From positions 62,001 through 126,000 of IMG/VR virus record IMGVR_UViG_3300042889_001272: a stretch of 64,000 nucleotides of DNA, one strand, 5' to 3'. This document shows, one piece after another, positions 8,518 to 63,346 of the stretch (positions within the stretch are counted from its first letter, which is position 1; every line of letters starts with the position of its first letter). The notes under the pieces are model-generated. The model searched no databases and was not told where the DNA came from. It saw only the letters and a program-made list of their open reading frames with translations. The translations under genes and the position numbers were made by a program.

Positions 8518-9198
8518 ATGTCATTGATTACAAAAAGCACGTATTTAAGAGGCCCAAAGGGCGATATTGGACTACAAGGACCACGCGGTGACCGCGGTCT
8601 ATCCGGTGCCCTAGGTCCACAAGGCCCACAAGGGGAAACATCCGTTCCCGCTAGCACTGACGATATATTAGAAGGCTTTAATAATCTATTTTTTACCAAC
8701 GAAAGAGCTGATGCAAGAGTTACCATTGGTATTAATAATTTAATCAACAGTGCTCCTAATTCATTAGACACATTAAATGAATTAGCCACTGCTTTAAACA
8801 ATGATTCAAATTTTGGCAGCACAGTTGTTACTAGTTTGGCAGGCAAATTGGCTATTGCAGGCGGCACGATGACTGGTGCATTAATATTAAATGCTGATCC
8901 TATTACAGAATTGGGTGCAGCCACAAAGCAATATGTAGATAATTTATCTACATCAGATATAGCAGAATCAACTAATTTATATTTTACAACGGTACGAGCA
9001 CGTAATAGTATTAATGTCACAGGAAGTTTAAGCTATAACAGCGAAACCGGAATTATTAGCTATGTAACTCCACTTACTGTAGCAAGCATTGGTAATCATA
9101 GCACTTCTGATCTAGCAGAAGGTTCGAATCTGTATTTTACAGAGCAACGAGTACTAAACGTTATAGAACAAGCTAATATGGACGGCGGCGAATATTAA
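8518..9198 (+). CDS. Collagen-like virion fibre/decoration protein
   Basis: GXY run (GPKGDIGLQGPRGDRG...), APNSLDTLNELATAL and GGTMTGAL motifs, three DxxEGxNLYFT-type repeats; TAAATA at 8493. Confidence 0.7.
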   Translation: MSLITKSTYLRGPKGDIGLQGPRGDRGLSGALGPQGPQGETSVPASTDDILEGFNNLFFTNERADARVTIGINNLINSAPNSLDTLNELATALNNDSNFGSTVVTSLAGKLAIAGGTMTGALILNADPITELGAATKQYVDNLSTSDIAESTNLYFTTVRARNSINVTGSLSYNSETGIISYVTPLTVASIGNHSTSDLAEGSNLYFTEQRVLNVIEQANMDGGEY

Positions 9199-25493: not shown

Positions 25494-27320
25494 ATGCGTT
25501 TTAACGAATTAACAGAACAATCACAATTAGATGAATTTCAATTGAATCCGACTGGTGCATTAGCCAGCATTATTAGATGGGGTGCTGAAAATCCAGCCGT
25601 GCTGGCGGCATTGGGTATTGCAGCCGGCGGCGGCGCATTCGCATTAACAAGTGGTGCAGCCGCACTAGGTCCATTGATGGCTGCTGTTACTTCTATTAAT
25701 GCGGGACAAGGCGCATTAGGTTTACTTAGTCTAGATAAACTCAAAGATTTAATTCAACAAAATCCCAGTCAGGCAGAAGGTTACATTAAAAAGTTAATTT
25801 ACAAATATGTAGGTGATCAATCAGACGTTGAAGAATTTGAAAAACTACACGCACAAACTGCTTATAAAGGTGAAACAGAATTCCGATGGAGAGCAGAAAA
25901 TTGGCCAGTAACAATGGACAAGAATGCCGCCGAAAGTTATTTAGAAAAGAATGACAAATATTGGTTGGATACTTACAATCAACCGCAAGGTGTGGCGGAA
26001 GGCGGCAGCGATTACGAAGAGTTACAGGACAAAATAGAGTGGTTAATGGGTGCGCCAAATTATCTAAAATCTGACGAGGCCAGAGAAACAGCAGCCTATA
26101 CACCAGATACTGATTCTGTCTGGGCCGGTTATCGTGATGACCAATTGACTAAGAAAAATGAATCAGTAACCGAAGCAAAGAGCTTACATAAGCGTGTTAA
26201 AATCGTCAAAGGACCGTATGCCGGAAAGTACGGCTGGATCCGCGAAATCAAACATGGCGCCTACAAAGGTGCGCCAAAAACATATTATGTCGATGTTGAA
26301 GGCGGTGGACAAGCTAACAACTTATCATCAAGTGAGTTGCGTTTGGCAAAAGAGCAAAATGTAACTGAATCCCAAGAAGATATGACTCCGAATTGGGCCA
26401 AGTATGTACTGGATCAAATTTACAACAGTGATGGCGCAGTCACACTGACTGACCTGTTTGACGAAGGTATCCCGGGCTTGCACGACATGTTCATGGCAAC
26501 TGCTAAAGCACATGGCCTTGATCCAGAAGAAGAATTTGAAGATGTTCAACATGAACTAACTGTAGAATTAGAAGATATCATCAAAGGTGGCCATGGATTG
26601 GACGAAGGCTATTACGATCTTAACAGTGATCTTCCAGGAATGGAACCAATTGACTTTTCATCTAATCCAAGTTTTAAAGATCTTATTACTCGTTATACAC
26701 AACTTGTATATCAAGGTCATGCCAGTGAAACAAGCCCAGAAGAAGATCAAGAACACGACGAGATCGAACAGTATGTTGCCAAACGTTTCGGTGAAAAAGG
26801 TTCTGCACATTTACAAAAAGCAGGCGAAGTTAGTTATTGGGGTCGAGATGACGGTAAAGGTAGCGGACACATTCGTTCCAGCAACTTAGGTCGTCCAAAT
26901 CAACCAGGTGGTAATTTCCGCACAACAAAATCAGGCAAGATGCACGGTCAAGATGTTAAAATGATGAAGAACAAAGTTGCAGATAGATTAGGTCGTCATC
27001 CTGAACCATCATTACCAGAAGGTAGATATGATAACCGCGATGCTTATCAACGTGATTATGACAACAGTGTAGCAGGTATGGGCAAGCGCCAATCTTATGC
27101 TTATAGTCAAGACGGCGGTGCCAACGATGAAGGATGGAACAATTATAAAGAACCAGAACCTAAGCGTAAAATTTACTCTTTGCAAATCAACGGAAAAACA
27201 TGGACACAGGATGGCAATACTGTTACGTTCTTTACACGAGAACGTGCAGAATCTGCAAAAAATTCTATACTGAACAAGCGTCCAGAAACAAAAATTGTAG
27301 TAATGGTACAAGAAGTTTAA
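25494..27320 (+). CDS. Modular putative internal head polyprotein
   Basis: Starts MRFNELTE (ATG 25494); modules joined by QGVAEG, ESVTEA, QNVTES, LDEG, LPEG. Confidence 0.7.
   Translation: MRFNELTEQSQLDEFQLNPTGALASIIRWGAENPAVLAALGIAAGGGAFALTSGAAALGPLMAAVTSINAGQGALGLLSLDKLKDLIQQNPSQAEGYIKKLIYKYVGDQSDVEEFEKLHAQTAYKGETEFRWRAENWPVTMDKNAAESYLEKNDKYWLDTYNQPQGVAEGGSDYEELQDKIEWLMGAPNYLKSDEARETAAYTPDTDSVWAGYRDDQLTKKNESVTEAKSLHKRVKIVKGPYAGKYGWIREIKHGAYKGAPKTYYVDVEGGGQANNLSSSELRLAKEQNVTESQEDMTPNWAKYVLDQIYNSDGAVTLTDLFDEGIPGLHDMFMATAKAHGLDPEEEFEDVQHELTVELEDIIKGGHGLDEGYYDLNSDLPGMEPIDFSSNPSFKDLITRYTQLVYQGHASETSPEEDQEHDEIEQYVAKRFGEKGSAHLQKAGEVSYWGRDDGKGSGHIRSSNLGRPNQPGGNFRTTKSGKMHGQDVKMMKNKVADRLGRHPEPSLPEGRYDNRDAYQRDYDNSVAGMGKRQSYAYSQDGGANDEGWNNYKEPEPKRKIYSLQINGKTWTQDGNTVTFFTRERAESAKNSILNKRPETKIVVMVQEV
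25986..26003 (+). repeat. GVAEG junction repeat, copy 1
   Basis: CAAGGTGTGGCGGAAGGC. Confidence 0.9.
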
Positions 27321-27720: not shown

Positions 27721-27737
27721 ACATTATAAATAATACT

Positions 27738-32503: not shown

Positions 32504-33286
32504 ATGATATTAAATGAGGGCGGTGATGTATTTGCAGACACCGAAGAATATGACCAAAAAGAAGCAACCGCTTTACAGGCTGTTGTAGATAAGGAATTAT
32601 CTTCTATTGGTCTATCATCCGTTATGATTGGCAGCGGTTTTCATCCTACTCCTGGACAAATGAGCGGGGATTTGGATCTACAAATAGAATTACAAGATAT
32701 CATTGATCGCTTCGATGTACAACCTGACCCTGCTGTTAAAAAAGATACTATAGAAAATGCTGCCCGCAGAACGCTGGCAGCACATCTACAAAGTAAAGGA
32801 TATCAAACAAAACGAGCAGGTATAAATGTTTTTATTCGTGTTCCTTATCAAGGTAAGTTTTATCAAGTAGACTTGGAATGTATATATAAGGTAGCAAAAG
32901 TAAGCAAATATCATCAGCATAAAATTCCTCAAGGTAGTACATACAAAGGCGTGGGCAAACAAATAATGATATCTATGTTGGCCAAAGAAAAAAATATGAT
33001 GTGGAGTGGTTGGGAAGGTTTATTTCAACGTACTCCTGATAATAAAAAAGGCGACATGGTCGCCGATGACTTTGATGATATAGCAAAAGTATTACTCGGG
33101 CCGCAATATGGTGAAGAAGATTTAGGCAGTGTAGAATCTATATTGGCTGCGCTGCCAAGTGCAAAAGCACAAGATTTATTGGCCAGGGCCAAGGCCGACA
33201 AAGCATGGAAAGAACGTGTGCCACGTGTAGAAAGTCTGCGTGTTGGCACCAATGAATGGTTCCGTAATATGATGAACAAGTTATGA
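32504..33286 (+). CDS. Pol-beta-superfamily nucleotidyltransferase-like protein
   Basis: MILNEGG start; GS...SGDLDL and FYQVDL motifs; TAAATA at 32476. Confidence 0.55.
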   Translation: MILNEGGDVFADTEEYDQKEATALQAVVDKELSSIGLSSVMIGSGFHPTPGQMSGDLDLQIELQDIIDRFDVQPDPAVKKDTIENAARRTLAAHLQSKGYQTKRAGINVFIRVPYQGKFYQVDLECIYKVAKVSKYHQHKIPQGSTYKGVGKQIMISMLAKEKNMMWSGWEGLFQRTPDNKKGDMVADDFDDIAKVLLGPQYGEEDLGSVESILAALPSAKAQDLLARAKADKAWKERVPRVESLRVGTNEWFRNMMNKL

Positions 33287-33942
33287 AAATAAACGACATT
33301 TTACGCGAGTACGACCAAGACTCTGCCAATAGTAAACAAATCATAGCAAAGCTGAAACAACTTGGATACAAGAGTGTTGGCAGCGGATATGATGCAACTG
33401 TATGGACCAAAGAAGAAGGCAGTGTTATTAAAATCATTATGCCGCAGGAGTTGTCTCGAGCAGAAGGAGACGCATCGTTTTTAGGGTTTTATGAGTTTTA
33501 TACTACACATAAGAAGTCACCATTCCTGCCAAGATTTATCAGCATTGGTGGCGCCGATCATACTGTGTTTACACTCAATGGAGTAGACTATAGACAAATA
33601 TCAATGGAGAATCTTGAACCCATTGCTAATAACAGCTTTATGGAACAGATGGTGTGGGCACTCAGTGACTTGTCCATTATACCTTTTATGAAATGGAGAG
33701 ACGCTAAAGAGCAACTGCTTAACTCTGAGTTTTGGACAAATTTTGAAGGACCAGGTAGAGAAAGCGACATCGTAAAAGGACTAAGTAATTCGGCAGTAGA
33801 GAAGATGTATGCAAGTTTATTTGCAGTGATGCAAGAGCTTTTTCAATTTGGAAAAAGTCAAGGACTGGGTTGGGATTTACACACTGAAAATGTTATGCGT
33901 CGAGGTGATACACCAGTTATCACTGACCCGTTTACCGGATAA
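33283..33942 (+). CDS. Kinase-like protein (protein kinase/APH fold)
   Basis: MKINDILRE start; GSGYDATVW, VIKII, WDLHTENVM, VITDP. Confidence 0.65.
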   Translation: MKINDILREYDQDSANSKQIIAKLKQLGYKSVGSGYDATVWTKEEGSVIKIIMPQELSRAEGDASFLGFYEFYTTHKKSPFLPRFISIGGADHTVFTLNGVDYRQISMENLEPIANNSFMEQMVWALSDLSIIPFMKWRDAKEQLLNSEFWTNFEGPGRESDIVKGLSNSAVEKMYASLFAVMQELFQFGKSQGLGWDLHTENVMRRGDTPVITDPFTG

Positions 33943-33946
33943 TAGT

Positions 33947-34375
33947 ATGCTAATTAAAGAACTAACAGAAAACGAAGAGCCAACAAGAATCAAACTAGCT
34001 GACAATTCAGCCGCCAAGTCTTGGATTCAAAAAGTCTATAATTTATATCCGCAACAGTTTCAAAACAACCACGTCATGCCCATGGGTGGTCAAGGCGATG
34101 ATCAACAGTTTGCCATGTTTGAACTTGTTCCAAGTTTTAGCAAACGTGGTGCAGTGGAAGTAAAATGGTTTCAAGCATATCCGCTACGTGCAGGAGTAGG
34201 CAGTCGTGCCATGAAAGAATTACAGAGCTTGGCCAGTGAAGATGGTATTTCACTTACATTATTCCCGTGGGATAAAGGACAAGTCAGTCAAAGTAAGCTA
34301 ACCAAGTTCTACCAAGGTCGGGGATTTAAGCCCGCTGTCAAAGGCAGCAAAAGTATGCAATGGAGTCCTGAATGA
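33947..34375 (+). CDS. GNAT acetyltransferase-like protein
   Basis: Starts MLIKELTE (ATG 33947); RAGVGSRAM acetyl-CoA motif A, LTKFYQGRGF. Confidence 0.6.
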   Translation: MLIKELTENEEPTRIKLADNSAAKSWIQKVYNLYPQQFQNNHVMPMGGQGDDQQFAMFELVPSFSKRGAVEVKWFQAYPLRAGVGSRAMKELQSLASEDGISLTLFPWDKGQVSQSKLTKFYQGRGFKPAVKGSKSMQWSPE

Positions 34376-35520
34376 GATTATTGGAACTAAAAGAATTAAT
34401 GGAAGCAGTGGATCCCAAGCTGGGTCGTGCTTTTAATCACTTAGAGGATCTTGTATTCTTCTATGGTAGTGCTGGTACTATTGAAGCATTGGAACATTTA
34501 AAAGATATGAACACAGAACAAGGTAGTTCGAGTGTTCGTATGAAGTGGGACGGCAATCCTCAAATTTACTGGGGTCGTGAGCGTGGTGTATTTGTTCCTC
34601 CGCATGGTCATAATCAGTGGAGTCGAAAAGCAATGCCTGCTAATCCAACGGATGTATCAGACTTTATTATGTCTAGTGGTAAAGCGGTTACTCCGGAAGA
34701 AGTCAGTGCGAGACAACAGTTTGCAGATAAGTTTGCCAGTTTAGCACCATTATTTGAACCAGGCACTCCTGCAGACTTGGATGGCAACAGCACATTCTAT
34801 GTCTATGCTGATGCACTATTCTTATCACCACCCGAGTTAAAGGACGGAGTTTATAGTTTCAATCCTAATCCAAAAAGTCAAACAACATATCATGTGCGAG
34901 CAGACAGTGATCTAGGACGTAGAATTGCAGGTGCAGAAGTTATGGTTGTTGGCCATGCTTACTTTACTGAACACGGCGCACCTGATTCAGCACAAATTCC
35001 TATCAAAGACTTTACAATGTTTAATGCTAATCCAAAACTAATTGTCCTGGGTCCAATATATAATGTAGCACCAGTTAAAGTTGATAATACAATGATTCAA
35101 CAAGTAGAGAATCATATCAAGCAACATGCAAATCAAGTTGATACATTCCTACAAAGTGTTGCAGGTTTAAGTGACTTAAAACAAATCATTTATAACTATG
35201 TAAATCAAAGTGCTAAGGCAAAACAATTAGATAGTTTAAGTGCTAATCACTTCTTCCAATGGATGACTTCAAAAGTCAGTGCTCCGAAACAAGCAAAGAT
35301 CAAAGAATTAAATTCTGCACAGGGCAATGTATTAGAAGAGATATTTAAAATTGTTCGTGCTATACAAATATTAAAAGACAATGTCATTGACCAAATTGAG
35401 TCAGGACCTCGAGCAGATATCTGGGACACCAACGGCGAAGGTCGTGTGCGTTATGCAGATGGAAATAAACAATTCGGCAACGTGAAGTTTGTACCGAGAA
35501 AGCGTTGGACACCACAATGA
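34372..35520 (+). CDS. Ligase-like nucleotidyltransferase (KxDG motif)
   Basis: MRLLELKE start; NHLEDL, VRMKWDGNP, GEGRV, VKFVPR. Confidence 0.55.
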   Translation: MRLLELKELMEAVDPKLGRAFNHLEDLVFFYGSAGTIEALEHLKDMNTEQGSSSVRMKWDGNPQIYWGRERGVFVPPHGHNQWSRKAMPANPTDVSDFIMSSGKAVTPEEVSARQQFADKFASLAPLFEPGTPADLDGNSTFYVYADALFLSPPELKDGVYSFNPNPKSQTTYHVRADSDLGRRIAGAEVMVVGHAYFTEHGAPDSAQIPIKDFTMFNANPKLIVLGPIYNVAPVKVDNTMIQQVENHIKQHANQVDTFLQSVAGLSDLKQIIYNYVNQSAKAKQLDSLSANHFFQWMTSKVSAPKQAKIKELNSAQGNVLEEIFKIVRAIQILKDNVIDQIESGPRADIWDTNGEGRVRYADGNKQFGNVKFVPRKRWTPQ

Positions 35521-35915
35521 GAATAAACGAATTAGATACAGCAAAACCAAAGACCAATGCAAAACAATTGCCTGGTTATGATAGTTCCAATCCCTTACAC
35601 TCTACTTGGAGTCGCGTGTACAGTAGGCAAACATATGAAGCTAAAAGAAAAGGTTTTGCAGTGAATATAACAGCAGCCGATGCATGGGAAGTTATTAATA
35701 AACAAGGATGGCGATGTGCTTTAACTGGAGTGGCGTTTGTTCCAGCCGGTGCTGCCAGTCCAAATCAAGCTAGTTTAGATAGAATAAATTCCAACCAAGG
35801 TTACATACATGGTAATATTCGCTATGTAACATATCGTGTAAATATGTTTAAGAAAGATTGGCCGGATGATGTATTTTTTGCTCTTTGCAAACAAATTGCG
35901 GCACACGTAGGATAA
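35517..35915 (+). CDS. HNH-like endonuclease
   Basis: MRINEL start; WRCALTG, SLDRINSNQGYIHGNIRYVTYRVN. Confidence 0.6.
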   Translation: MRINELDTAKPKTNAKQLPGYDSSNPLHSTWSRVYSRQTYEAKRKGFAVNITAADAWEVINKQGWRCALTGVAFVPAGAASPNQASLDRINSNQGYIHGNIRYVTYRVNMFKKDWPDDVFFALCKQIAAHVG

Positions 35916-35923
35916 AAGAAATT

Positions 35924-38482
35924 ATGAAAATAAATCAAGTATTAGTAGAATCAGCAAGCGCAACAGTGGCGTTTGCTTTTGGCAGATTTAATCCTGCACA
36001 TCAAGGACATATTGAAGTATGGCGCACAGTGGAACAAGCTGGCGCAAATTGGTTCATTGGAACCAATGCCACTACCATTGGTCCTAATGATCCACTTACA
36101 TTCCAACAAAAATCTGCTTGGATGGAAGAAATTTATCCTCCTATCTCTGGACATATTGTTCCTGAACAAAGCGTATTGACATTGGCAGCTTACATCTTTA
36201 AGAAGACACGTAAGAATGAACGTGCCACGGTAGCTTATATTACTGATGAAACCGATTGGGCTTGGAGTGGTAAGTTATTAAATCAATACAATGGTGTCGA
36301 AGGTGTTCACGGTTATTACAAGTTTGCACAGATTATTCATGAGCCAAGCCCACGTGTAAGTAGTGCCACAGCATTACGTGATGCGGCTCGTGCCGATGAC
36401 AAGGTTGCGTTCTATCATGCCAGTGGAACTGATCCTAAATCAAAGGTCGCTGGACTAACATACTTTGACACAGTTAAACAAGCAGTTGAGAAATATCCAT
36501 TGCCAGTTAAACGTGGACAAAAAGTTAAAGAGCCTATTGTGGCGGAAGGCTCGGACGATGTTGCTAGTGCTACACCAGCAAAAAACGAACGCGGAAGATT
36601 CACGGCGTGGGATGATGATGAACCGATGCGTTTGAAATGTGAAGATGGTGAGTTTAGAACCATACAAGAAATCAATATGCTTAGACAGAAAATAGGAATG
36701 AAACCTTTTTCTATCAAAAGTCAGCAAGGTGTGGCGGAAGGTAACTTAAACGAATTTGCACCTGGTGCTGGCGATGAAGGTGGCGGCGAAGATCCATACA
36801 AGTACCCCAAGCCAGAGCGGTATCGTCGTAGTGTAGATTTCTTTGGTCAGTTTGAAGCAGATCATTTTGATCGTGAAGACATGGATGACGCCAAGGGCGA
36901 GTTCAAAGGCTATTGGGGCAAAGATCAAATTGCCTATTTTAAATTTGATAACCCCAAGCGCACAGGCAGCGATGACCCGGGCATGGGCTGGTACTATGAA
37001 CCCCAGTTGAGCGGTCATGGTGATAATACCAGTGTGACACCTGCTGTTGATAATACCGAACAACGCAAGCAACAAGAATTAAGCATGATTCGTGCGTTTT
37101 TAAAATCTGGCAATCGACCAAATCCAGACAGTCAAATTTATAATTTAATGAAACGACATGGTATAGCGGAAAGCGACGAAGATCGTATAGCATACAAATT
37201 ACAATGGCCCGAACTTGTCAACAAAGTTAACAGTGCAATGAGGGCCATGGGTTGGAAAGGCCAACGTAAAGACGATGGTTCTTTTATGTTCATCACTAAA
37301 GGCCAACTCGACGATGAGTTTTACATTGTTATTATAGACAACAAAGGCAATGACATGTTTACCTATGCATTAGGCACAGTCGAAGAAGGTTCCCCACATA
37401 TCGGCGAACAAGATACATTGCCCAATACAGAAGCTAGCATAAGTGAATTGATGAATTCTATTAGGGAAGGATTTGGATTAAATGAAAATGCTGAACAACC
37501 TAATAATCCATATGGTTACAAAGTAGGTCAAACAGTCAAACTACATAACAAGCTACAGGGTCGTGTAATTGATATTTTCGATGACAGTATCGAAGTATTA
37601 TTAACTGACGGGCGCACTGTTACGGTGAACTTCCGTGACGCTGAAGTTCTAGGAGAGCACAGTGTAGCCGAAGCAGAACAACAAACTGTGGCCAAGACCT
37701 GGGATCAAATGACAAGTCAAGAGAAACTAAGTGGTGTTAAAGGTCGCACAGTATGGAATGAAAAAACACAGAGATATTACACAGTGTTTGATGTTCCAAT
37801 AAAACAGCCCACAGACGAAGCAAGTTTAGCAACTATGCGTGATTACTTTGCTGGTGATCAAAATGCTCAAGATCCTACTACGCTGGCAAAACAACGTACT
37901 TGGTTTGATAAAACTAAAGATAAAAACGGGCGTGCCATTGTAGATAAAAGATTTAGAAGTCCAGAAGAATTTCGACTATGGTTAAAACAAAACAAATTAA
38001 AACAAATTTCCGGCGTTAAAGAAGATGAAGAGCAGGGAGAAGTTGAACAACAAGGACAACTTATTCCATGGCCGGCAGGTACTGCTAAAGTTCATGTCAG
38101 CGATGTATACGATTGGTATAAGCTAGGACAAGTTATCAGTGATTTAGATGATGCTAATCCTGAAGCATTTGGACAAGGTGCTCCGCAGACAGTTATTGCT
38201 TTTGGCAGCGAAGAAGAAGAAAGCAAACTAATGCCAATGTTAAAGCGTTTAGGTCTGCGTATAGATGATATAGATCCTGCGGGCGCCGAATTAGATGAAG
38301 CATATCACGCAGGAGAACTTTATGAATACTTAAAGAAAGTTCATGGCAAGTGGGCATTAGTAAGTAAAAGCAATCCAAAGAAAGTATTACAATACTATCG
38401 TGGCGGAGATGAAAAACCCAGTGATGAATGGGTTAATAAAGTAGAACGTCGTGTACATAGCTTTGAAAGTAAAAAGAAATGA
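35924..38482 (+). CDS. Cytidylyltransferase-like (HxGH) enzyme fused to multiple small modules
   Basis: Starts MKINQVLVE (ATG 35924); FGRFNPAHQGH, RVSSATALR; C-terminal modules joined by IVAEG, QGVAEG, HGIAES, HSVAEA, LDEA. Confidence 0.7.
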   Translation: MKINQVLVESASATVAFAFGRFNPAHQGHIEVWRTVEQAGANWFIGTNATTIGPNDPLTFQQKSAWMEEIYPPISGHIVPEQSVLTLAAYIFKKTRKNERATVAYITDETDWAWSGKLLNQYNGVEGVHGYYKFAQIIHEPSPRVSSATALRDAARADDKVAFYHASGTDPKSKVAGLTYFDTVKQAVEKYPLPVKRGQKVKEPIVAEGSDDVASATPAKNERGRFTAWDDDEPMRLKCEDGEFRTIQEINMLRQKIGMKPFSIKSQQGVAEGNLNEFAPGAGDEGGGEDPYKYPKPERYRRSVDFFGQFEADHFDREDMDDAKGEFKGYWGKDQIAYFKFDNPKRTGSDDPGMGWYYEPQLSGHGDNTSVTPAVDNTEQRKQQELSMIRAFLKSGNRPNPDSQIYNLMKRHGIAESDEDRIAYKLQWPELVNKVNSAMRAMGWKGQRKDDGSFMFITKGQLDDEFYIVIIDNKGNDMFTYALGTVEEGSPHIGEQDTLPNTEASISELMNSIREGFGLNENAEQPNNPYGYKVGQTVKLHNKLQGRVIDIFDDSIEVLLTDGRTVTVNFRDAEVLGEHSVAEAEQQTVAKTWDQMTSQEKLSGVKGRTVWNEKTQRYYTVFDVPIKQPTDEASLATMRDYFAGDQNAQDPTTLAKQRTWFDKTKDKNGRAIVDKRFRSPEEFRLWLKQNKLKQISGVKEDEEQGEVEQQGQLIPWPAGTAKVHVSDVYDWYKLGQVISDLDDANPEAFGQGAPQTVIAFGSEEEESKLMPMLKRLGLRIDDIDPAGAELDEAYHAGELYEYLKKVHGKWALVSKSNPKKVLQYYRGGDEKPSDEWVNKVERRVHSFESKKK
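36538..36550 (+). repeat. GVAEG junction repeat, copy 2
   Basis: TGTGGCGGAAGGC. Confidence 0.85.
36719..36742 (+). repeat. GVAEG junction repeat, copy 3
   Basis: AGTCAGCAAGGTGTGGCGGAAGG; 23 nt identical to 44407-44429. Confidence 0.9.
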
Positions 38483-38736
38483 GATCCGTAAATCAAAGTT
38501 ATACAACTATTGATATCATTGTCGATGAATTTGACGAACAAATTATTGATATGTTAAAACAACGGTATCCTGCTTTATCTATTGCAAGAGTAAATGCTAC
38601 TAGATTTAACAAAGATTCTACTAACTTGTTAAAGTTTTATCTATATCATTGGATATTTGATAACTATGAATCTGCTATCGTTGACATTAATAATTATTAC
38701 AATAAATATACTATTAGCACGAAAGTCGTAGCATGA
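38479..38736 (+). CDS. AT-rich hypothetical protein
   Basis: Coupled ORF lacking the shared N-terminal tag. Confidence 0.45.
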   Translation: MRSVNQSYTTIDIIVDEFDEQIIDMLKQRYPALSIARVNATRFNKDSTNLLKFYLYHWIFDNYESAIVDINNYYNKYTISTKVVA

Positions 38737-40949
38737 AATATCTAGAACTAAAAGAACAACTACTCAACGAAATTAATATGAGCCCCAGTGCTTTACGCCG
38801 TGCTGCCAAAGACATTGGTGCTAAGGCAGGCATGGAATTTGAAATGATTGTTCCCGGTGCTGCCGAAAGCGAAGAAGGTGATGACTATCAAGAACCAGAC
38901 TACGACAGTGATGAAAGCATTCGCAGTATTCAAGATGCCTATGATTTCTTCTACGATGGTGATTTTAATAGCCGTAGAGATGCAGAGCGCCTACGTGATC
39001 AAATGACAGACAACTACACTGATTGGCTGGGCACTCAATCTGGGGATCGCTGGGAATCTGATAAAGAAGAAATGATATATGATTGGCTGCGCTACAATGC
39101 CGCGCCCAGCGATGTATTTGGTATACTAGAAGTAGCTGCCAGCGCCAGCGGAGATTATCCTGATCCCTCTAAAGAAGATTACAGAAATGCTGCCGCCAAA
39201 GTAGCTGAAGATAGAATAGATCCATGGTATGACGATGCTTATCAAGATTTTACTGACAATTTCTACAGAGATGCAGACATGGAAAGTGAATGGCTCGAAC
39301 ATGAAGCTATAGAAAGTATGGTCGACGTTGAACAGAATTATAACATTGTTTGGCCACATTATCATAATCCGGATAACTCAGGCGGTGATGTTAGTATACA
39401 AGATGCCGCAGACAGTTTCAGTAATGCCATTGGTAAAGAAGTACAGGCCAGCGACAATTATCACAGTCGTAGTATAACAAGACCCAGTGCCACAGAATTA
39501 CACTATGTTGTGGAACCTGACGGTAGCTTAGAAGCAGATGAACCCGGAGATGGCGGTTTAGAATTTGTCAGTCCAGCATTGCCCATAGATGAATTATTAG
39601 ATGACTTGAAAAAAGTTAAAGCATGGGCAGATAAGTTTGGCTGTTATACAAATGACAGCACAGGTTTGCACATCAACGTCAGTGTTCCAAAATGGCAAGG
39701 TGATTTGCAAAATCTAGACTATGTTAAACTTGCTATTTTAATGGGCGACGAATATGTTTTAGAAAACTTTGGACGCAGTGGTAATACCTATGCCAAAAGC
39801 GCACTAAAGATTGTTAAAGATAATATCACACAGCGTCCAGAAGATGTCAAACGTTTGTTAGACACTATGAAAGAGCACTTAAACACCAGCGCCGCAAAAT
39901 TAATACACAGTGGCGCCACTAGTAAATACACCAGCGTTAATACCAAAGATGGTTACATTGAATTCCGTAGTCCAGGTGGTGATTGGTTAAACAGTAACTT
40001 TGATAAGATTGAATCTACATTATTACGTTTTGTTGTAGCCATGGATGCTGCCGCAGACGAAACAAAATACAAAGAAGAATACGCCAAGAAACTTTATAAG
40101 TTATTAGCAGGCAATGACAAAGATACTACAAATACCATGGTTTACTTTGCCAAATATGCCGCAGGTGAATTGCCTCAGAGCGCATTAAAGAGTTTTATTA
40201 AACAAGCACAGTTTGAACGTAAGGCAGGCAAAGAACCCAATGGTAAAAAAATGTGGTATCGTGTTGACAAAGAAGGACGTGGTAAGAGTGGTGCAAGCAT
40301 TGAAGTTGTTGCTAGATCAAAAGAAGAGGCATTAGAAAAAGCAGCCAGTAATTGGAGTTTAAAGCTAAGTGCATTAACTGCGGCCGCTGTTTATCCAGTT
40401 CGCCCCTATGAAGAGCAACGCTACGAAATATTTAATTTAAACACAAACAATAGCGTAGAAGATGCTGAAGGTATTACTAATGATAGAGATGCATTAGTGC
40501 GTTTGCAGGATTACATTGAACATGGTCCTCACGGATTACAACGTGGACAAGCAACAGATATGTTTGGCATAAGACGAGTTGGCGGAGATGGCGAACCTAT
40601 ACAACCAAATCCAATTCGTGCTACTGTAGGCGCTCCACAACCTGCTGGTAGTGTTGGACAATCAACTCCTAGACCTATTCCCGGTGTTATTGATATTGAG
40701 CCTGATATAGAACAGAACTTTACACCTGTACCAGGTAGCACAACAAACTTACAGCAACAACGTGCAACACCCGGCACGTTTACAGGTGCTTGGAAAGTAA
40801 TGAATGTCGACACTGGACAAGAATTATATAGATTCAGCGGCATTGGTAATTCGCAGTCAGATGCTAATGGTGTCGCTTTACAATGGATAAGACAACATGC
40901 CCCGAACACAGACTTGGTACAAATTGAAGTTGTGCCCATAATGAGCTAA
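38733..40949 (+). CDS. Putative amidoligase (COOH-NH2 ligase type 2) with C-terminal modules
   Basis: MKYLELKE start; GMEFE, VEPDGSL, GLEFVSP, STGLHINVS, IEFRSPGG. Confidence 0.7.
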   Translation: MKYLELKEQLLNEINMSPSALRRAAKDIGAKAGMEFEMIVPGAAESEEGDDYQEPDYDSDESIRSIQDAYDFFYDGDFNSRRDAERLRDQMTDNYTDWLGTQSGDRWESDKEEMIYDWLRYNAAPSDVFGILEVAASASGDYPDPSKEDYRNAAAKVAEDRIDPWYDDAYQDFTDNFYRDADMESEWLEHEAIESMVDVEQNYNIVWPHYHNPDNSGGDVSIQDAADSFSNAIGKEVQASDNYHSRSITRPSATELHYVVEPDGSLEADEPGDGGLEFVSPALPIDELLDDLKKVKAWADKFGCYTNDSTGLHINVSVPKWQGDLQNLDYVKLAILMGDEYVLENFGRSGNTYAKSALKIVKDNITQRPEDVKRLLDTMKEHLNTSAAKLIHSGATSKYTSVNTKDGYIEFRSPGGDWLNSNFDKIESTLLRFVVAMDAAADETKYKEEYAKKLYKLLAGNDKDTTNTMVYFAKYAAGELPQSALKSFIKQAQFERKAGKEPNGKKMWYRVDKEGRGKSGASIEVVARSKEEALEKAASNWSLKLSALTAAAVYPVRPYEEQRYEIFNLNTNNSVEDAEGITNDRDALVRLQDYIEHGPHGLQRGQATDMFGIRRVGGDGEPIQPNPIRATVGAPQPAGSVGQSTPRPIPGVIDIEPDIEQNFTPVPGSTTNLQQQRATPGTFTGAWKVMNVDTGQELYRFSGIGNSQSDANGVALQWIRQHAPNTDLVQIEVVPIMS

Positions 40950-43649: not shown

Positions 43650-45024
43650 GCAAAGAGCCAGACAGCTTTATGAACTAGCAGATCGTTTAAGCAAGCTAGA
43701 CATTAATTCGCTGTCAGAACAACAATTAGAACAACGTAATACAATGATTTCTAAGTTGCAAGAAGAAGTTAAAACAATTAAAGAGTTTGCTCCTGACGAT
43801 GGCGACGATGGCGCAGGTGGCGAAGAAGATACATTACACAAATATGCCCGTATGTGGTATAATGGCAATGAAACTACACAACAACAAGTTGAAAAAATAT
43901 TAGACCGTATGGGTTGGGAAATTGGCGAATTAGAATCAGAAGAAGGTGGCGCTTTTGTTGTACAATCAGGTGACGAAAATGGTAATAGTTATATTGGCTT
44001 TGCAGTCGCTGACTTGTTAGAAGGTATTACTGATAATAAAGACGCTGGCGAATATGATCAAGAAGGCGATATGGCTCGTCAAGATCTTGCCACTGCCGCT
44101 AATGCCGCAGAAGAATTACGCAGTATTTTAGACAGCGATGAGAACTTGCCAGAATGGGTTCAATCAAAGATTACTAAAGCAGTTGACTATTTAGATACTG
44201 TTCGTGATTATATGAAAAGTAAAGATCAAGATGTAACAGAAGCTTCACAGCGAGTTGATTCACTGGTCACTGACGCATTAAAAATAATGCGTGGTTCATC
44301 AATGAATGATGCTGTTCAAGCATTAAAGACTGTGCTTGGTGATAGAGAATACAATGGCCGACGCAATCATTACAATTTCTATGTTAGACAAATCATGGAT
44401 ATGTATAGTCAGCAAGGTGTGGCGGAAGGCGTTGAGGAATCCAATGTAAAGATTTTACAAAAGTTGCTTGCAGACGAAGGTTACACTTATCCAATTGGAA
44501 TACTAAGTCGAAGATTAAAACTTCTTTCCACAAATCAATCAAAAGTGCTTGCGAGATTGTTTGTGAATGCTCAAAGGGCACAAGATGAAGAATTAAAACT
44601 TGAATTGATTGATAAAATTGATGGTGTAATTTCCAGGGAAGCAGAGAGAAGAAGCGATCCATGGAAAGGTGTGGCGGAAGGCGTTGCAGAAACTTTGTCA
44701 ATGGACGAAGCCAAAAAAGTGCTACGTCATTATGGTGCTGATAATTTCAAAACAACCAGCAACGAATTGCATTTTTATAAAAACGGCCGCCCATTCAGTG
44801 TTGACTTGATCATGAACGATGATGCAACTCGCAGTGTAAGTCTAAGCCAGTTAAATTCAGCTACTCGTAGATTAAAAGGCCAAGGTGTGACTGAAACTAA
44901 AAAGACAAGCCCAAAACTCACGCCAGTTAATATCAAAAAAACTGACCCAGTCAGTGAAGAAATAAATACAGAAGCATACGAAAGACTACAAAAGGTTTTC
45001 GCATTTAAGAATTATGAAAGTTAA
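43630..45024 (+). CDS. Modular polyprotein with GVAEG junctions
   Basis: Junctions IKEFAP, LLEG, QDVTEA, QGVAEG, KGVAEG, QGVTET; start 43630 or 43642. Confidence 0.7.
   Translation: MELTMDKQRARQLYELADRLSKLDINSLSEQQLEQRNTMISKLQEEVKTIKEFAPDDGDDGAGGEEDTLHKYARMWYNGNETTQQQVEKILDRMGWEIGELESEEGGAFVVQSGDENGNSYIGFAVADLLEGITDNKDAGEYDQEGDMARQDLATAANAAEELRSILDSDENLPEWVQSKITKAVDYLDTVRDYMKSKDQDVTEASQRVDSLVTDALKIMRGSSMNDAVQALKTVLGDREYNGRRNHYNFYVRQIMDMYSQQGVAEGVEESNVKILQKLLADEGYTYPIGILSRRLKLLSTNQSKVLARLFVNAQRAQDEELKLELIDKIDGVISREAERRSDPWKGVAEGVAETLSMDEAKKVLRHYGADNFKTTSNELHFYKNGRPFSVDLIMNDDATRSVSLSQLNSATRRLKGQGVTETKKTSPKLTPVNIKKTDPVSEEINTEAYERLQKVFAFKNYES
44407..44434 (+). repeat. GVAEG junction repeat, copy 4
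   Basis: AGTCAGCAAGGTGTGGCGGAAGGCGTTG. Confidence 0.9.
44666..44686 (+). repeat. GVAEG junction repeat, copy 5
   Basis: AAGGTGTGGCGGAAGGCGTTG; 21 nt identical to 44414-44434, 252 nt apart. Confidence 0.9.
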
Positions 45025-61963: not shown

Positions 61964-62794
61964 ATGACAGCAACATTCAAAAAAAACGAATCCATTCATG
62001 GAACTTCCTTTGCGTTTAAAAAAGACAATATTGTCGACTCTACGGAAATCACAACCGTGAATGAAACAGGTCTGGACGCAATGGCAGGCGATGGTGGATA
62101 CCAAGAAGCGTATCTCGGTGATCATCTTCGATTTAAGATGAAACGTGAGGGCAAACGTTTTTGGGCAGGCGATAACATCAGCGATTACCTGCACGAAGGC
62201 GATATAGAAAAACTAATCGACGAAGCAACTCCAGCATTTGAACAAGTGCTAGATAGTTTGCTAATTGATCGTGAGAATGATCCTAACAGTAAAGGTACTG
62301 CAAGACGACTTGCTAAAATGTACTTTAATGAAATTATGGCAGGAAGATATGAACAAGCTCCAGACGCAACAGCATTTCCAAATGATTCGGCAGACCGTTA
62401 TGAAGGCATGCTCGTGGTTCGCAGTGAACTTCGTAGTATGTGTAGTCATCATCACCAACCCGTTACTGGGGTTGCTTATATTGGCATTATCGCGGCAGAG
62501 AAACTGATCGGTCTTAGCAAGTACACTCGTATCGCACAATGGTGTGCTAGGCGTGGTACTTTACAAGAAGAACTTTGCAATGACATTGCCCGTGAGATTA
62601 GCAAAGCTACTGATTCGGAAAACGTAGCTGTGTATATCCAGGCTGTTCATGGATGCTGTGAGAATAGGGGTATTATGGCACATAGCAGTTTGACTCAAAC
62701 TACTGTACTTAAAGGATTCTTTAAAGAAGATCCGGGTGCAAAGAAAGAATTCTTTGATAATATTAAACTACAACAGGAGTTTGCACCAAGATGA
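61964..62794 (+). CDS. folE: GTP cyclohydrolase I
   Basis: TARRLAKMY, SMCSHHHQP, IGLSKYTR, LQEEL, HGCCENRG. Confidence 0.92.
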   Translation: MTATFKKNESIHGTSFAFKKDNIVDSTEITTVNETGLDAMAGDGGYQEAYLGDHLRFKMKREGKRFWAGDNISDYLHEGDIEKLIDEATPAFEQVLDSLLIDRENDPNSKGTARRLAKMYFNEIMAGRYEQAPDATAFPNDSADRYEGMLVVRSELRSMCSHHHQPVTGVAYIGIIAAEKLIGLSKYTRIAQWCARRGTLQEELCNDIAREISKATDSENVAVYIQAVHGCCENRGIMAHSSLTQTTVLKGFFKEDPGAKKEFFDNIKLQQEFAPR

Positions 62795-62994
62795 AAGATC
62801 CAGTAATAGAATCCAAAGCCAATGAATTAAAGTCGTTGGTTGATCAAGTTAATCAAATTATGAGTGATCTACAAGACATGAATGTAGAAGTTAGAATTGC
62901 ATATATTGATAAAAATGAACATAATCCTACTAATGAAAAATTAAGACAGGGCATCAAACTTTGGCGAGTAGAAGAGCACAATGGCTACCTCTAA
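62791..62994 (+). CDS. Hypothetical protein
   Basis: Coupled ORF. Confidence 0.55.
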   Translation: MKDPVIESKANELKSLVDQVNQIMSDLQDMNVEVRIAYIDKNEHNPTNEKLRQGIKLWRVEEHNGYL

Positions 62995-63346
62995 TCCAGG
63001 TTACGGTGCTATTCCACCTGGGCCACCTGGGCCACCTGGGCCACCTGGGCCGCAAGGATTAAGCGGACAGATTCTAACTGCTAATGGTATGAATGGTAGT
63101 AATTGGTCGCCGCAACATACTAATGCTGTTCAAATTGGTAGTCCTGATCCTGTTATTACATTTAAATTAGACGGTGACATCGTAACCAAAGCAGGAACTA
63201 TTACAGCAGATGATTGGATTTCTGTTATCAAAGTTATGAAACAGTTGATCATGGATATGAGCCAAGATGAGGAATTAGTATCTAAATATCCATATATACG
63301 AGATGCGGCACATATATGGATGATTAACAAACTTAAAGGAGAATAA
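62981..63346 (+). CDS. Hypothetical protein with short (PPG)n tract
   Basis: IPPGPPGPPGPPGPQG. Confidence 0.6.
   Translation: MATSNPGYGAIPPGPPGPPGPPGPQGLSGQILTANGMNGSNWSPQHTNAVQIGSPDPVITFKLDGDIVTKAGTITADDWISVIKVMKQLIMDMSQDEELVSKYPYIRDAAHIWMINKLKGE
63014..63051 (+). repeat. Perfect 9-nt tandem repeat
   Basis: (CCACCTGGG)x4 plus CC. Confidence 0.95.

Follow-up and report, generated by a model that had tools for sequence, protein, structure and literature searches.

A nucleotidyltransferase-led string of shuffling modules as a candidate head-targeted cargo polyprotein of a T4-related jumbo phage

The gene studied here is an open reading frame (ORF) at positions 35924-38482, plus strand, of a 64,000-nucleotide stretch of IMG/VR virus record IMGVR_UViG_3300042889_001272 (positions 62,001 to 126,000 of that record; this whole stretch is called the window below). 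It is a single ORF of 852 residues with its ATG at 35924 and its stop at 38480-38482, in agreement with the coordinates given by a first-pass annotation of the same DNA, and an identical copy is held by a second IMG/VR contig (L004). We assign a probability of about 0.52 to the reading that the product is a head-targeted cargo polyprotein of a T4-related jumbo phage, processed by the prohead protease. The protein consists of a short leader, a folded nucleotidyltransferase domain and a string of modules that occur independently of one another in other phages; its junctions are conserved in both protein and DNA and are equivalent to the N-terminal leader; the genome carries a gp21-type prohead protease gene, and genes with the same type of leader are clustered around this one.

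From these features we infer packaging, cleavage, injection and effector function for the modules, as well as a role of the junction DNA in recombination, as follows. The leader MKINQVLVE would dock the precursor on the prohead scaffolding core, like the capsid targeting sequence (CTS) of T4 IPI-III and Alt, and the gp21-type prohead protease would cut after Glu in [V/I/L]-x-E, both at the leader and at exposed junctions between modules. The proposed cuts, marked by arrows, are IVAE↓G, QGVAE↓G, LNE↓F, GIAE↓S, LNE↓N, SVAE↓A, TDE↓A and VKE↓D. They would yield an NMNAT/PPAT-like nucleotidyltransferase of 22 kDa together with seven or eight small proteins of 5-17 kDa, predicted to remain in the capsid and to pass into the host along with the DNA, as early effectors. 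The junction, which is usually one invariant 17-nt DNA word, may double as microhomology for module swaps between carrier genes, and module swapping at junctions, if it occurs as proposed, would explain why related phages bear differing cargo on the same enzyme head.

The independence of the modules was established by comparison with relatives. When residues 200-852 were searched against 1.84 billion representative proteins, 653 relatives were found, 158 of them below 1e-30, and mapping the 150 best onto the protein defined the modules. The relatives, which range from 105 to 1,433 residues, match differing sub-ranges at differing positions and never end to end; the modules occur in them alone, in other orders, or fused to unrelated domains including sigma-70 region 4, GNAT, Zeta toxin, ParB_N and several domains of unknown function (DUFs). 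In close relatives the enzyme head is about 85% identical and the cargo differs, being modules C and D in L005, D followed at a distance by C in L007, and A in L008, and in other phages modules from six other genes of the surrounding cluster are joined to those of the present protein. Genes with a complete leader and essentially one module also exist (P0149 and P0127 with D, P0110 with B), and all three sit in tight arrays of further leader-bearing genes. Stand-alone homologues with their own tag, which the first-pass annotation had named as support for independent modules, are thus present. Based on the variety of orders, partners and cargo among the relatives, the modules are not one continuous fold in an evolutionary sense, which answers the refuting condition of a single continuous fold that the same annotation had set. 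No module is duplicated, and no paralogous modules were found within the genome.

Seven modules and a tail follow the enzyme. Module a (residues 209-272, 36548-36739, 7.2 kDa) ends in QQGVAE and is found elsewhere at 93-96% identity (P0144, L015-L017). It is followed, at 36740-37171, by a second site GNLNE↓F (residues 273-277) and module A (residues 278-416, 15.9 kDa, C-terminal HGIAE), which is the most widespread of all with about 70 matches. Module B (residues 417-521, 37172-37486, 11.9 kDa, C-terminal GLNE) has about 60 matches, and its model in the ESM Atlas is similar to free-standing viral proteins about 100 residues long (template modelling score (TM) 0.64-0.70) and to YbjN-like folds. 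The SH3-like module S (residues 522-583, 37487-37672, 6.9 kDa, C-terminal HSVAE) has a weak, sub-threshold match to Myosin_N SH3-like (6.3e-4) and is present in relatives with or without B and C. Module C1 (residues 584-632, 37673-37819, C-terminal TDE) stands alone directly after the leader in P0011 and P0012 and is joined straight to D in P0038, and module C2 (residues 633-700, 37820-38023, C-terminal GVKE) starts with ASLATMRDYF, after xVDE↓ and behind varied upstream sequence in P0037, P0047, P0055 and P0071. The last segment (38024-38482) comprises module D (residues 701 to about 805), a C-terminal tail (about 806-852) and the stop codon; matches to D end at 805-815, and the tail is found separately in L036.

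Pfam matched no known family to any passenger module, for which the first-pass annotation had suggested possible anti-restriction or anti-CRISPR roles. Searches with the separate modules gave nothing above cut-off, the sub-threshold hits being Myosin_N SH3-like, DUF6301, GRASP55 PDZ-like and DUF5594. The ESM Atlas held no usable model of module A, and a single-sequence AlphaFold2 (AF2) prediction of the whole 852-residue protein was not usable (predicted local distance difference test (pLDDT) 35.8). When module fragments were aligned with MAFFT to the full protein (A3) and to its A+B part (A4), many rows came out misaligned, so these alignments were not used for folding and an alignment-based fold was obtained for the enzyme domain only.

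The relatives break homology at residues 267-275, 411-419, 521-529, 578-583 and 700, and also at 632. The first-pass annotation had named nine x-x-E sites between about eight modules, and since the breakpoints coincide with sites, eight of the nine (IVAE208, GVAE272, LNE277, GIAE416, LNE521, SVAE583, TDE632 and VKE700) are module boundaries; the ninth, LDE at 790-792, lies inside module D and marks no boundary. At 630-632, TDE represents the family's xVDE↓ASL in degenerate form. Those checks proposed by the annotation that could be made in silico all favored its reading, which is supported in part and fails for LDE. The opposite view, that this is an ordinary large single-fold protein in which such motifs arise by chance because Glu is common, could draw on that site, on a Glu content of 8.1% and on the mild enrichment of the loose [LIV]xE pattern (19 in the protein, 11.2 expected from shuffles, 1.7-fold). 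The stricter [IV]AE[GSA] occurs four times against 0.11 expected (none of 5000 shuffles reached four), a 14-nt core of the junction DNA is found four times in the window with 0.00 expected, homology breaks off precisely at the sites in hundreds of relatives, and single-module genes exist. Chance or artefact is thereby effectively refuted, and we regard its probability as negligible.

At the protein level, unrelated upstream sequences, when aligned at module starts, converge on K/Q-Q-G-V-A-E↓G/A/S. In the resulting junction profile P1 is Glu, P3 is Val, Leu, Ile or Met, P4 is Gly and P5 is Gln, with P2 varied (Ala, Thr, Ser, Lys or Asn), and a variable P2 is what is expected of a protease that reads P3 and P1. 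Module A always opens with x-L-N-E↓F-A-P-G (P3 Leu in 48 of 58, P1 Glu in 55 of 58, P1' Phe in 55 of 58), and the junction upstream of module B is KQGVAE↓G/A across unrelated contexts. The G[IV]AE motif occurs seven times in the 74,346-residue proteome, six of them in three genes of the cluster, namely the present one and those at 25494 and 43630.

The junctions are also equivalent to the leader. Where a module is the first in its protein, the final [IV]xE of the leader aligns onto the internal xVAE column, as for B in P0068, P0110 and P0131 and for A in P0056, P0025 and P0049, where the LNEF is the leader itself; N-terminal leaders falling on this column include MRASEFIKE↓, MRIADIVTE↓ and MKIAEIINVAE↓. 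In seven nucleotidyltransferase homologues (P0163, P0168, P0180, P0186, P0189, P0190 and P0201) the junction holds a complete internal leader with its Met (REMRAKEFIAE↓), a relic showing that leader-bearing genes fuse in frame to give rise to the strings. Internal translation starts at the junctions were considered as well and rejected, the junctions of the present ORF having no start codon.

One junction is carried by a 17-nt box, CAAGGTGTGGCGGAAGG, at 36725-36741 on the plus strand, which encodes QGVAEG. Its core recurs in the window at 25989-26002, 44416-44429 and 44668-44681, and at least 120 IMG/VR stretches (including L039-L118) contain the 17-mer; among the copies listed, 102 of 103 are in the QGVAEG frame inside long ORFs, with successive copies 50-229 residues apart. 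By eye about 30 of the 51 box ORFs with a visible 5' end are leader-initiated, and 25 of the 51 are by a stricter pattern. The junction is nearly always written CAA GGT GTG GCG GAA GGC (in 34 distinct contexts GGT 33 times, GTG 31, GCG 30, GAA 33 and GGC 27), in codons that are rare for this genome, where GTG accounts for 20% of Val and GCG for 8% of Ala. The conserved block spans about 18 nt and ends abruptly on either side, where the flanks are unrelated. Near-invariant codons, a bounded block and unrelated flanks together imply that the box spreads as DNA, and judging from its nucleotide pattern, the simplest reading would be that it is the microhomology by which modules are exchanged. A fuller version, which we put forward tentatively and hold to be less probable than the polyprotein reading itself, is that QGVAEG and its 17-nt word have a dual role, as a recombination linker giving access to a shared pool of hundreds of modules and as an in-capsid site for the prohead protease.

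The same codon pattern and bounded 17-nt conservation, pointing to DNA-level spread, favor another explanation, in which the protein is polyvalent multi-domain cargo delivered intact, losing at most its leader, with QGVAEG as flexible linkers or recombination boxes. Phage and plasmid effectors with several domains that are delivered as one polypeptide are described (PMC5512222), and relatives of the present protein hold the typical polyvalent-protein domains ParB_N, Zeta toxin and GNAT. However, junctions other than the box (GIAE, SVAE, GMAE, GVTE, GVSE, VKE and LNE) differ from it in P2 and codons and still retain a hydrophobic P3 and a Glu at P1, as does VDE; leaders whose codons vary align exactly on the junction [IV]xE; complete internal leaders exist; and a pure linker has no need of an invariant Glu. 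We consider intact delivery rather unlikely, though it is the strongest competitor of the polyprotein reading.

Several observations weigh against cleavage at every junction and against the polyprotein reading as a whole. With codons nearly invariant, conservation of the box could be purely a DNA-level matter of recombination or common descent, and its spread as DNA makes conservation at this junction weaker proof that a protease site is under selection; codons are likewise conserved in GWYYEP, a motif within module A taken as a control. An extra sub-boundary near residue 361 has no site, and the boundary between D and the tail has no clear one. T4-like proteases leave many [LI]xE sites uncut, and the phage is distantly T4-like at most; a search for cleavage data on the phages with the nearest MCPs (PA5oct, Vibrio 2.275.O and large Erwinia jumbo phages) found none here. 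A complex prediction of the prohead protease with residues 255-295 returned a score of 0.00, which counts neither for nor against.

One link to the head is the leader. It (residues 1-9, 35924-35950) is MKINQVLVE, ends in L-V-E↓S and resembles the T4 CTS. In an alignment of 72 homologues M1 is invariant and E9 at least 90% conserved, and nearly all of the 150 module relatives and 64 nucleotidyltransferase homologues begin with the same type of leader (MKITQVLVE, MRAKEFIVE, MRASEFIKE, MLLRELFE and others), with the consensus M-[RKL]-[LIA]-x-[EQD]-[LIF]-[FLI]-E. The leader codons vary while the peptide is kept. When a position-specific scoring matrix (PSSM) built from the relatives' N-termini was scored over the 293 ORFs of the genome, the top 11 all fell within one 21-kb cluster (25494-46810), with the present gene third, and rank 12 was a 70-residue gene between the portal and prohead protease genes. 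In T4 this position is occupied by small core proteins. Experiments on T4 IPIII showed that its first 10 residues are enough for head targeting and that processing hinges on residues 8 and 10, the P3 and P1 positions (PMC9026906), and foreign proteins fused to the T4 CTS get packaged and processed (PMC9026906, PMC7411985, PMC3012670).

The source is a viral contig of 235.6 kb with an estimated completeness of 66% (GC content 39%), a jumbo phage genome with a T4-type head module. PHROG matches identify the portal (phrog_213, 3.8e-109), the head maturation protease of T4 type, or gp21 type (phrog_207, 1.2e-58; genome 223773-224405), a protein in the scaffold position (phrog_10922, 4.8e-85, a family without annotation) and the major capsid protein (MCP; phrog_138, 1.9e-99). 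The nearest MCPs, at about 66% identity, are those of Pseudomonas phage PA5oct, Vibrio phage 2.275.O and large Erwinia and Sinorhizobium jumbo phages. The presumed MCP propeptide reads ...NIME↓SASAGA, to be set beside ...LVE↓SASATV in the present protein; we take it to end there from the T4 gp23 cut position, not from an alignment. NATAAATA motifs lie upstream of the portal gene, of three other late-region genes and of several cluster genes. Genome-wide, NATAAATA is found 11-30 nt upstream of many start codons, and it is probably this phage's late promoter word, of T4 type; the exact T4 late promoter TATAAATA is depleted in the window (one copy, at 27725, versus 6.7 expected).

A quite different possibility is that the product is no virion protein, the leader, generalized as M-[KR]-x-x-[EQD]-[LIF]-x-E, serving translation initiation context, intracellular targeting or degradation control in a cytoplasmic multi-domain enzyme encoded by a hypervariable accessory region. 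More than 110 kb separate the cluster from the head genes, and metabolic genes surround it; the relatives are all annotated as hypothetical protein, none as structural. Megablast and tblastn searches of cultured phages with the present gene gave weak N-terminal matches in Methylophilales phage Melnitz and nothing more, a neighboring DUF6267 gene matched only Prochlorococcus phages, and weakly, and these searches turned up no relative from a cultured phage whose virion proteome is available. On the other hand, the T4 IP and alt genes likewise lie outside the head gene block, and outside the cluster a leader of this type is found on a single gene, the one between portal and prohead protease. The leader peptide is kept despite codon variation, is disordered ahead of the fold, and resembles the experimentally defined T4 CTS including its hydrophobic P3 and Glu P1 (PMC9026906). 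On this balance a purely cytoplasmic role appears improbable to us, and more so than intact delivery.

The first product of the polyprotein reading would be the enzyme. The first-pass annotation had recognized a HxGH nucleotidyltransferase domain of about 200 residues, and profile matches, motif conservation and a confident fold all bear this out. The domain (residues 10-208, 35951-36547) contains HxGH and ISSTxxR motifs, with a folded core at about residues 11-195 and, at 196-208, a basic tail and the VKE/IVAE junction. Residues 10-186 match phrog_3041 (8.6e-12) and phrog_395 (6.4e-10), both annotated as cytidyltransferase. The Pfam family CTP_transf_like scored 20.1 bits, just under its cut-off of 21, and matched 7 of 79 relatives at E <= 0.001 (best 1.3e-6). 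A word search gave 64 nucleotidyltransferase homologues, many of them stand-alone proteins of 195-210 residues that stop, after the basic tail, at the position of the first junction. Invariant in the 72-homologue alignment are G28 and H29 (of the motif H26-Q-G-H29), S147, A148 and R152, and H26 is conserved in at least 90%. With this alignment AF2 modeled the domain at a pLDDT of 89.6, falling below 50 only at residues 1-10 and 202-210, so that the leader and the first junction are the flexible ends of a compact fold. Foldseek placed the NadM NMNAT 2qjo on top (E 6.5e-6, TM 0.51), followed by PPAT and NadD, and of 64 PDB matches at E <= 1e-3 the best 50 all belong to the HxGH nucleotidyltransferase superfamily; a PDB sequence search with the domain gave no significant match. 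Based on the model, the domain is assigned to the HxGH nucleotidyltransferase superfamily, nearest to the NMN and phosphopantetheine adenylyltransferases, and the fold ranking offers an NAD-related (NMNAT-like) role as a lead. In P0213 and in two members of alignment A2, the same nucleotidyltransferase head is joined to sigma-70 region 4 (Pfam 1.7e-16), possibly an injected passenger that interferes with transcription.

The cluster recognized by the leader PSSM (25494-46810, plus strand) comprises about 15 co-oriented leader-bearing genes with about 6,800 residues of putative head cargo. Gene starts in the window include 25494, 27322, 33283, 33947, 34372, 35517, 35924, 38733, 40951, 42048, 43440, 45027 and 46430, and leaders include MRFNELTE, MRLNEF, MKINDILRE, MLIKELTE, MRLLELKE (twice), MRINEL, MKYLELKE, MRLLDLK, MKIKELISE, MKLFEL and MKIAEILSE. 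A frameshift joining a 69-residue leader ORF to the next one (43440/43630) was rejected on account of an in-frame stop directly upstream. The gene at 33283-33942 encodes a leader-bearing protein of 219 residues with a weak match (1.2e-5) to phrog_15752, annotated as protein kinase and inhibitor of host transcription, and its product is by sequence a candidate injected kinase. For the ORF at 33848-34375, the TTG/ATG starts listed are probably wrong: the relatives P0033 and P0044 start at an internal Met (MLIKELTENEEP, 33947), 5 nt past the previous stop, and a start there restores a typical leader. Directly upstream of the nucleotidyltransferase gene, 35517-35915 encodes a protein with the leader MRINELDTA that matches endonuclease, endonuclease VII and HNH PHROGs (3.9e-19); its matches to Srd anti-sigma and sigma-70 decoy families are weaker. 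Downstream, 38733-40949 encodes a leader-bearing protein (MKYLELKE) of 738 residues with an Amidoligase_2 domain (1.8e-7), and on another contig a 994-residue amidoligase-like gene lies behind a single-module gene. Elsewhere in the window, the translations of 8518-9198 (GPKGDIGLQGPRGDRG...) and 62981-63346 (GPPGPPGPPGPQG) contain collagen-like G-x-y repeats.

If the polyprotein reading is true, the injected cargo of phages would reach beyond a handful of small internal proteins and could be a large and fast-recombining library, here of about 15 genes and dozens of modules, ordered by leader and junction. It would provide a sequence rule for spotting early effectors that uncultured jumbo phages package in advance, and these would be candidates for roles in anti-defence or host takeover or for nucleotide- or NAD-related enzymes. 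It would also attach a defined delivery route to hundreds of small orphan domains for functional screening and suggest a natural model for packaging several cargos in engineered T4-type capsids. Should the dual role of the box also hold, it would amount to natural combinatorial loading and delivery of effector libraries, with each virion injecting a phage-specific cocktail. The in-frame 17-nt box would also make a clear example on which to try the old 'linker' model of how phage genomes become mosaic, within coding sequence.

Compared with known systems, the enzyme domain shares with the HxGH superfamily (NMNAT NadM/NadD, PPAT CoaD and cytidylyltransferases; PF01467) the HxGH and ISSTxxR-type motifs and a Rossmann-like fold that matches 2qjo, PPATs and NadD at a Foldseek probability of 1.0. 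It differs in identity, at only 10-17%, with a TM of about 0.5 and a score below the Pfam gathering threshold, and in belonging to a family that is phage-only and whose members always bear a leader. As in viral polyproteins generally, a conserved cleavage-type motif stands at the junctions, and residues 202-210 are disordered beside a confident fold.

The closest parallel is with the T4 proteins IPI, IPII, IPIII and Alt, which likewise carry a short N-terminal leader ending in hydrophobic-x-Glu (PMC9026906, PMC3012670, PMC7411985). At 9 residues the present leader falls within the range of about 7-20 that characterizes propeptides of this class. Both systems have a gp21-type protease, a scaffold core and a gp23-type MCP, both carry hypervariable cargo in which the leader alone is conserved, and in both an enzyme is among the cargo (Alt in T4, the nucleotidyltransferase here). 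The likeness is one of the leader; the present protein matches none of the IP/Alt families in PHROG or Pfam. T4 cargo comes as single units with one cleavage each, whereas up to eight or nine units per ORF with internal leader-equivalent sites are found here, in a far larger repertoire (about 15 genes and 6,800 residues in one cluster) and with a junction that has a DNA box of its own.

With the polyvalent proteins of Iyer, Burroughs, Anand, de Souza and Aravind (2017, PMC5512222), as far as the available part of that study goes, the protein shares many unrelated small domains per polypeptide, shuffling and a presumed delivery with the DNA. Their processing is described there as mainly by built-in peptidase (MPTase) domains, whereas the present protein has no peptidase domain and its junctions mimic the leader site of the prohead protease. 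None of their hallmark domains (MuF, ART, MPTase, DarB-type helicase/methylase, ParB and others) was found in it, the relatives having some ParB_N, Zeta_toxin and GNAT. For the phiKZ-like giants (phiKZ, 201phi2-1 and SPN3US), the portions of the literature at hand describe a gp21-related protease with a Glu-ended three-residue motif, as here, and many head-protein substrates, some cut more than once, which the present string recalls (PMC10052503, PMC7411985). Cutting there follows an A/S/G-x-E motif and for the most part takes off long N-terminal propeptides; shuffled module families or a junction box are not reported for them in those portions (PMC10052503, PMC7411985). The phage studied here is not phiKZ-like, its MCP being nearest to those of PA5oct and Vibrio 2.275.O.

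An in-frame junction box, enzyme-led strings of modules separated by leader sites, and a shuffling family of this size were not found described in the literature searched. The nearest precedent for the box is the PeSL cassettes, with which it shares short conserved DNA flanking exchangeable modules in hyperplastic T4-type regions (PMC2839356). PeSLs are intergenic promoter/stem-loop elements that move whole genes (PMC2839356), whereas the box in this phage is 17 nt long, lies inside ORFs in a single reading frame and encodes the junction peptide itself.

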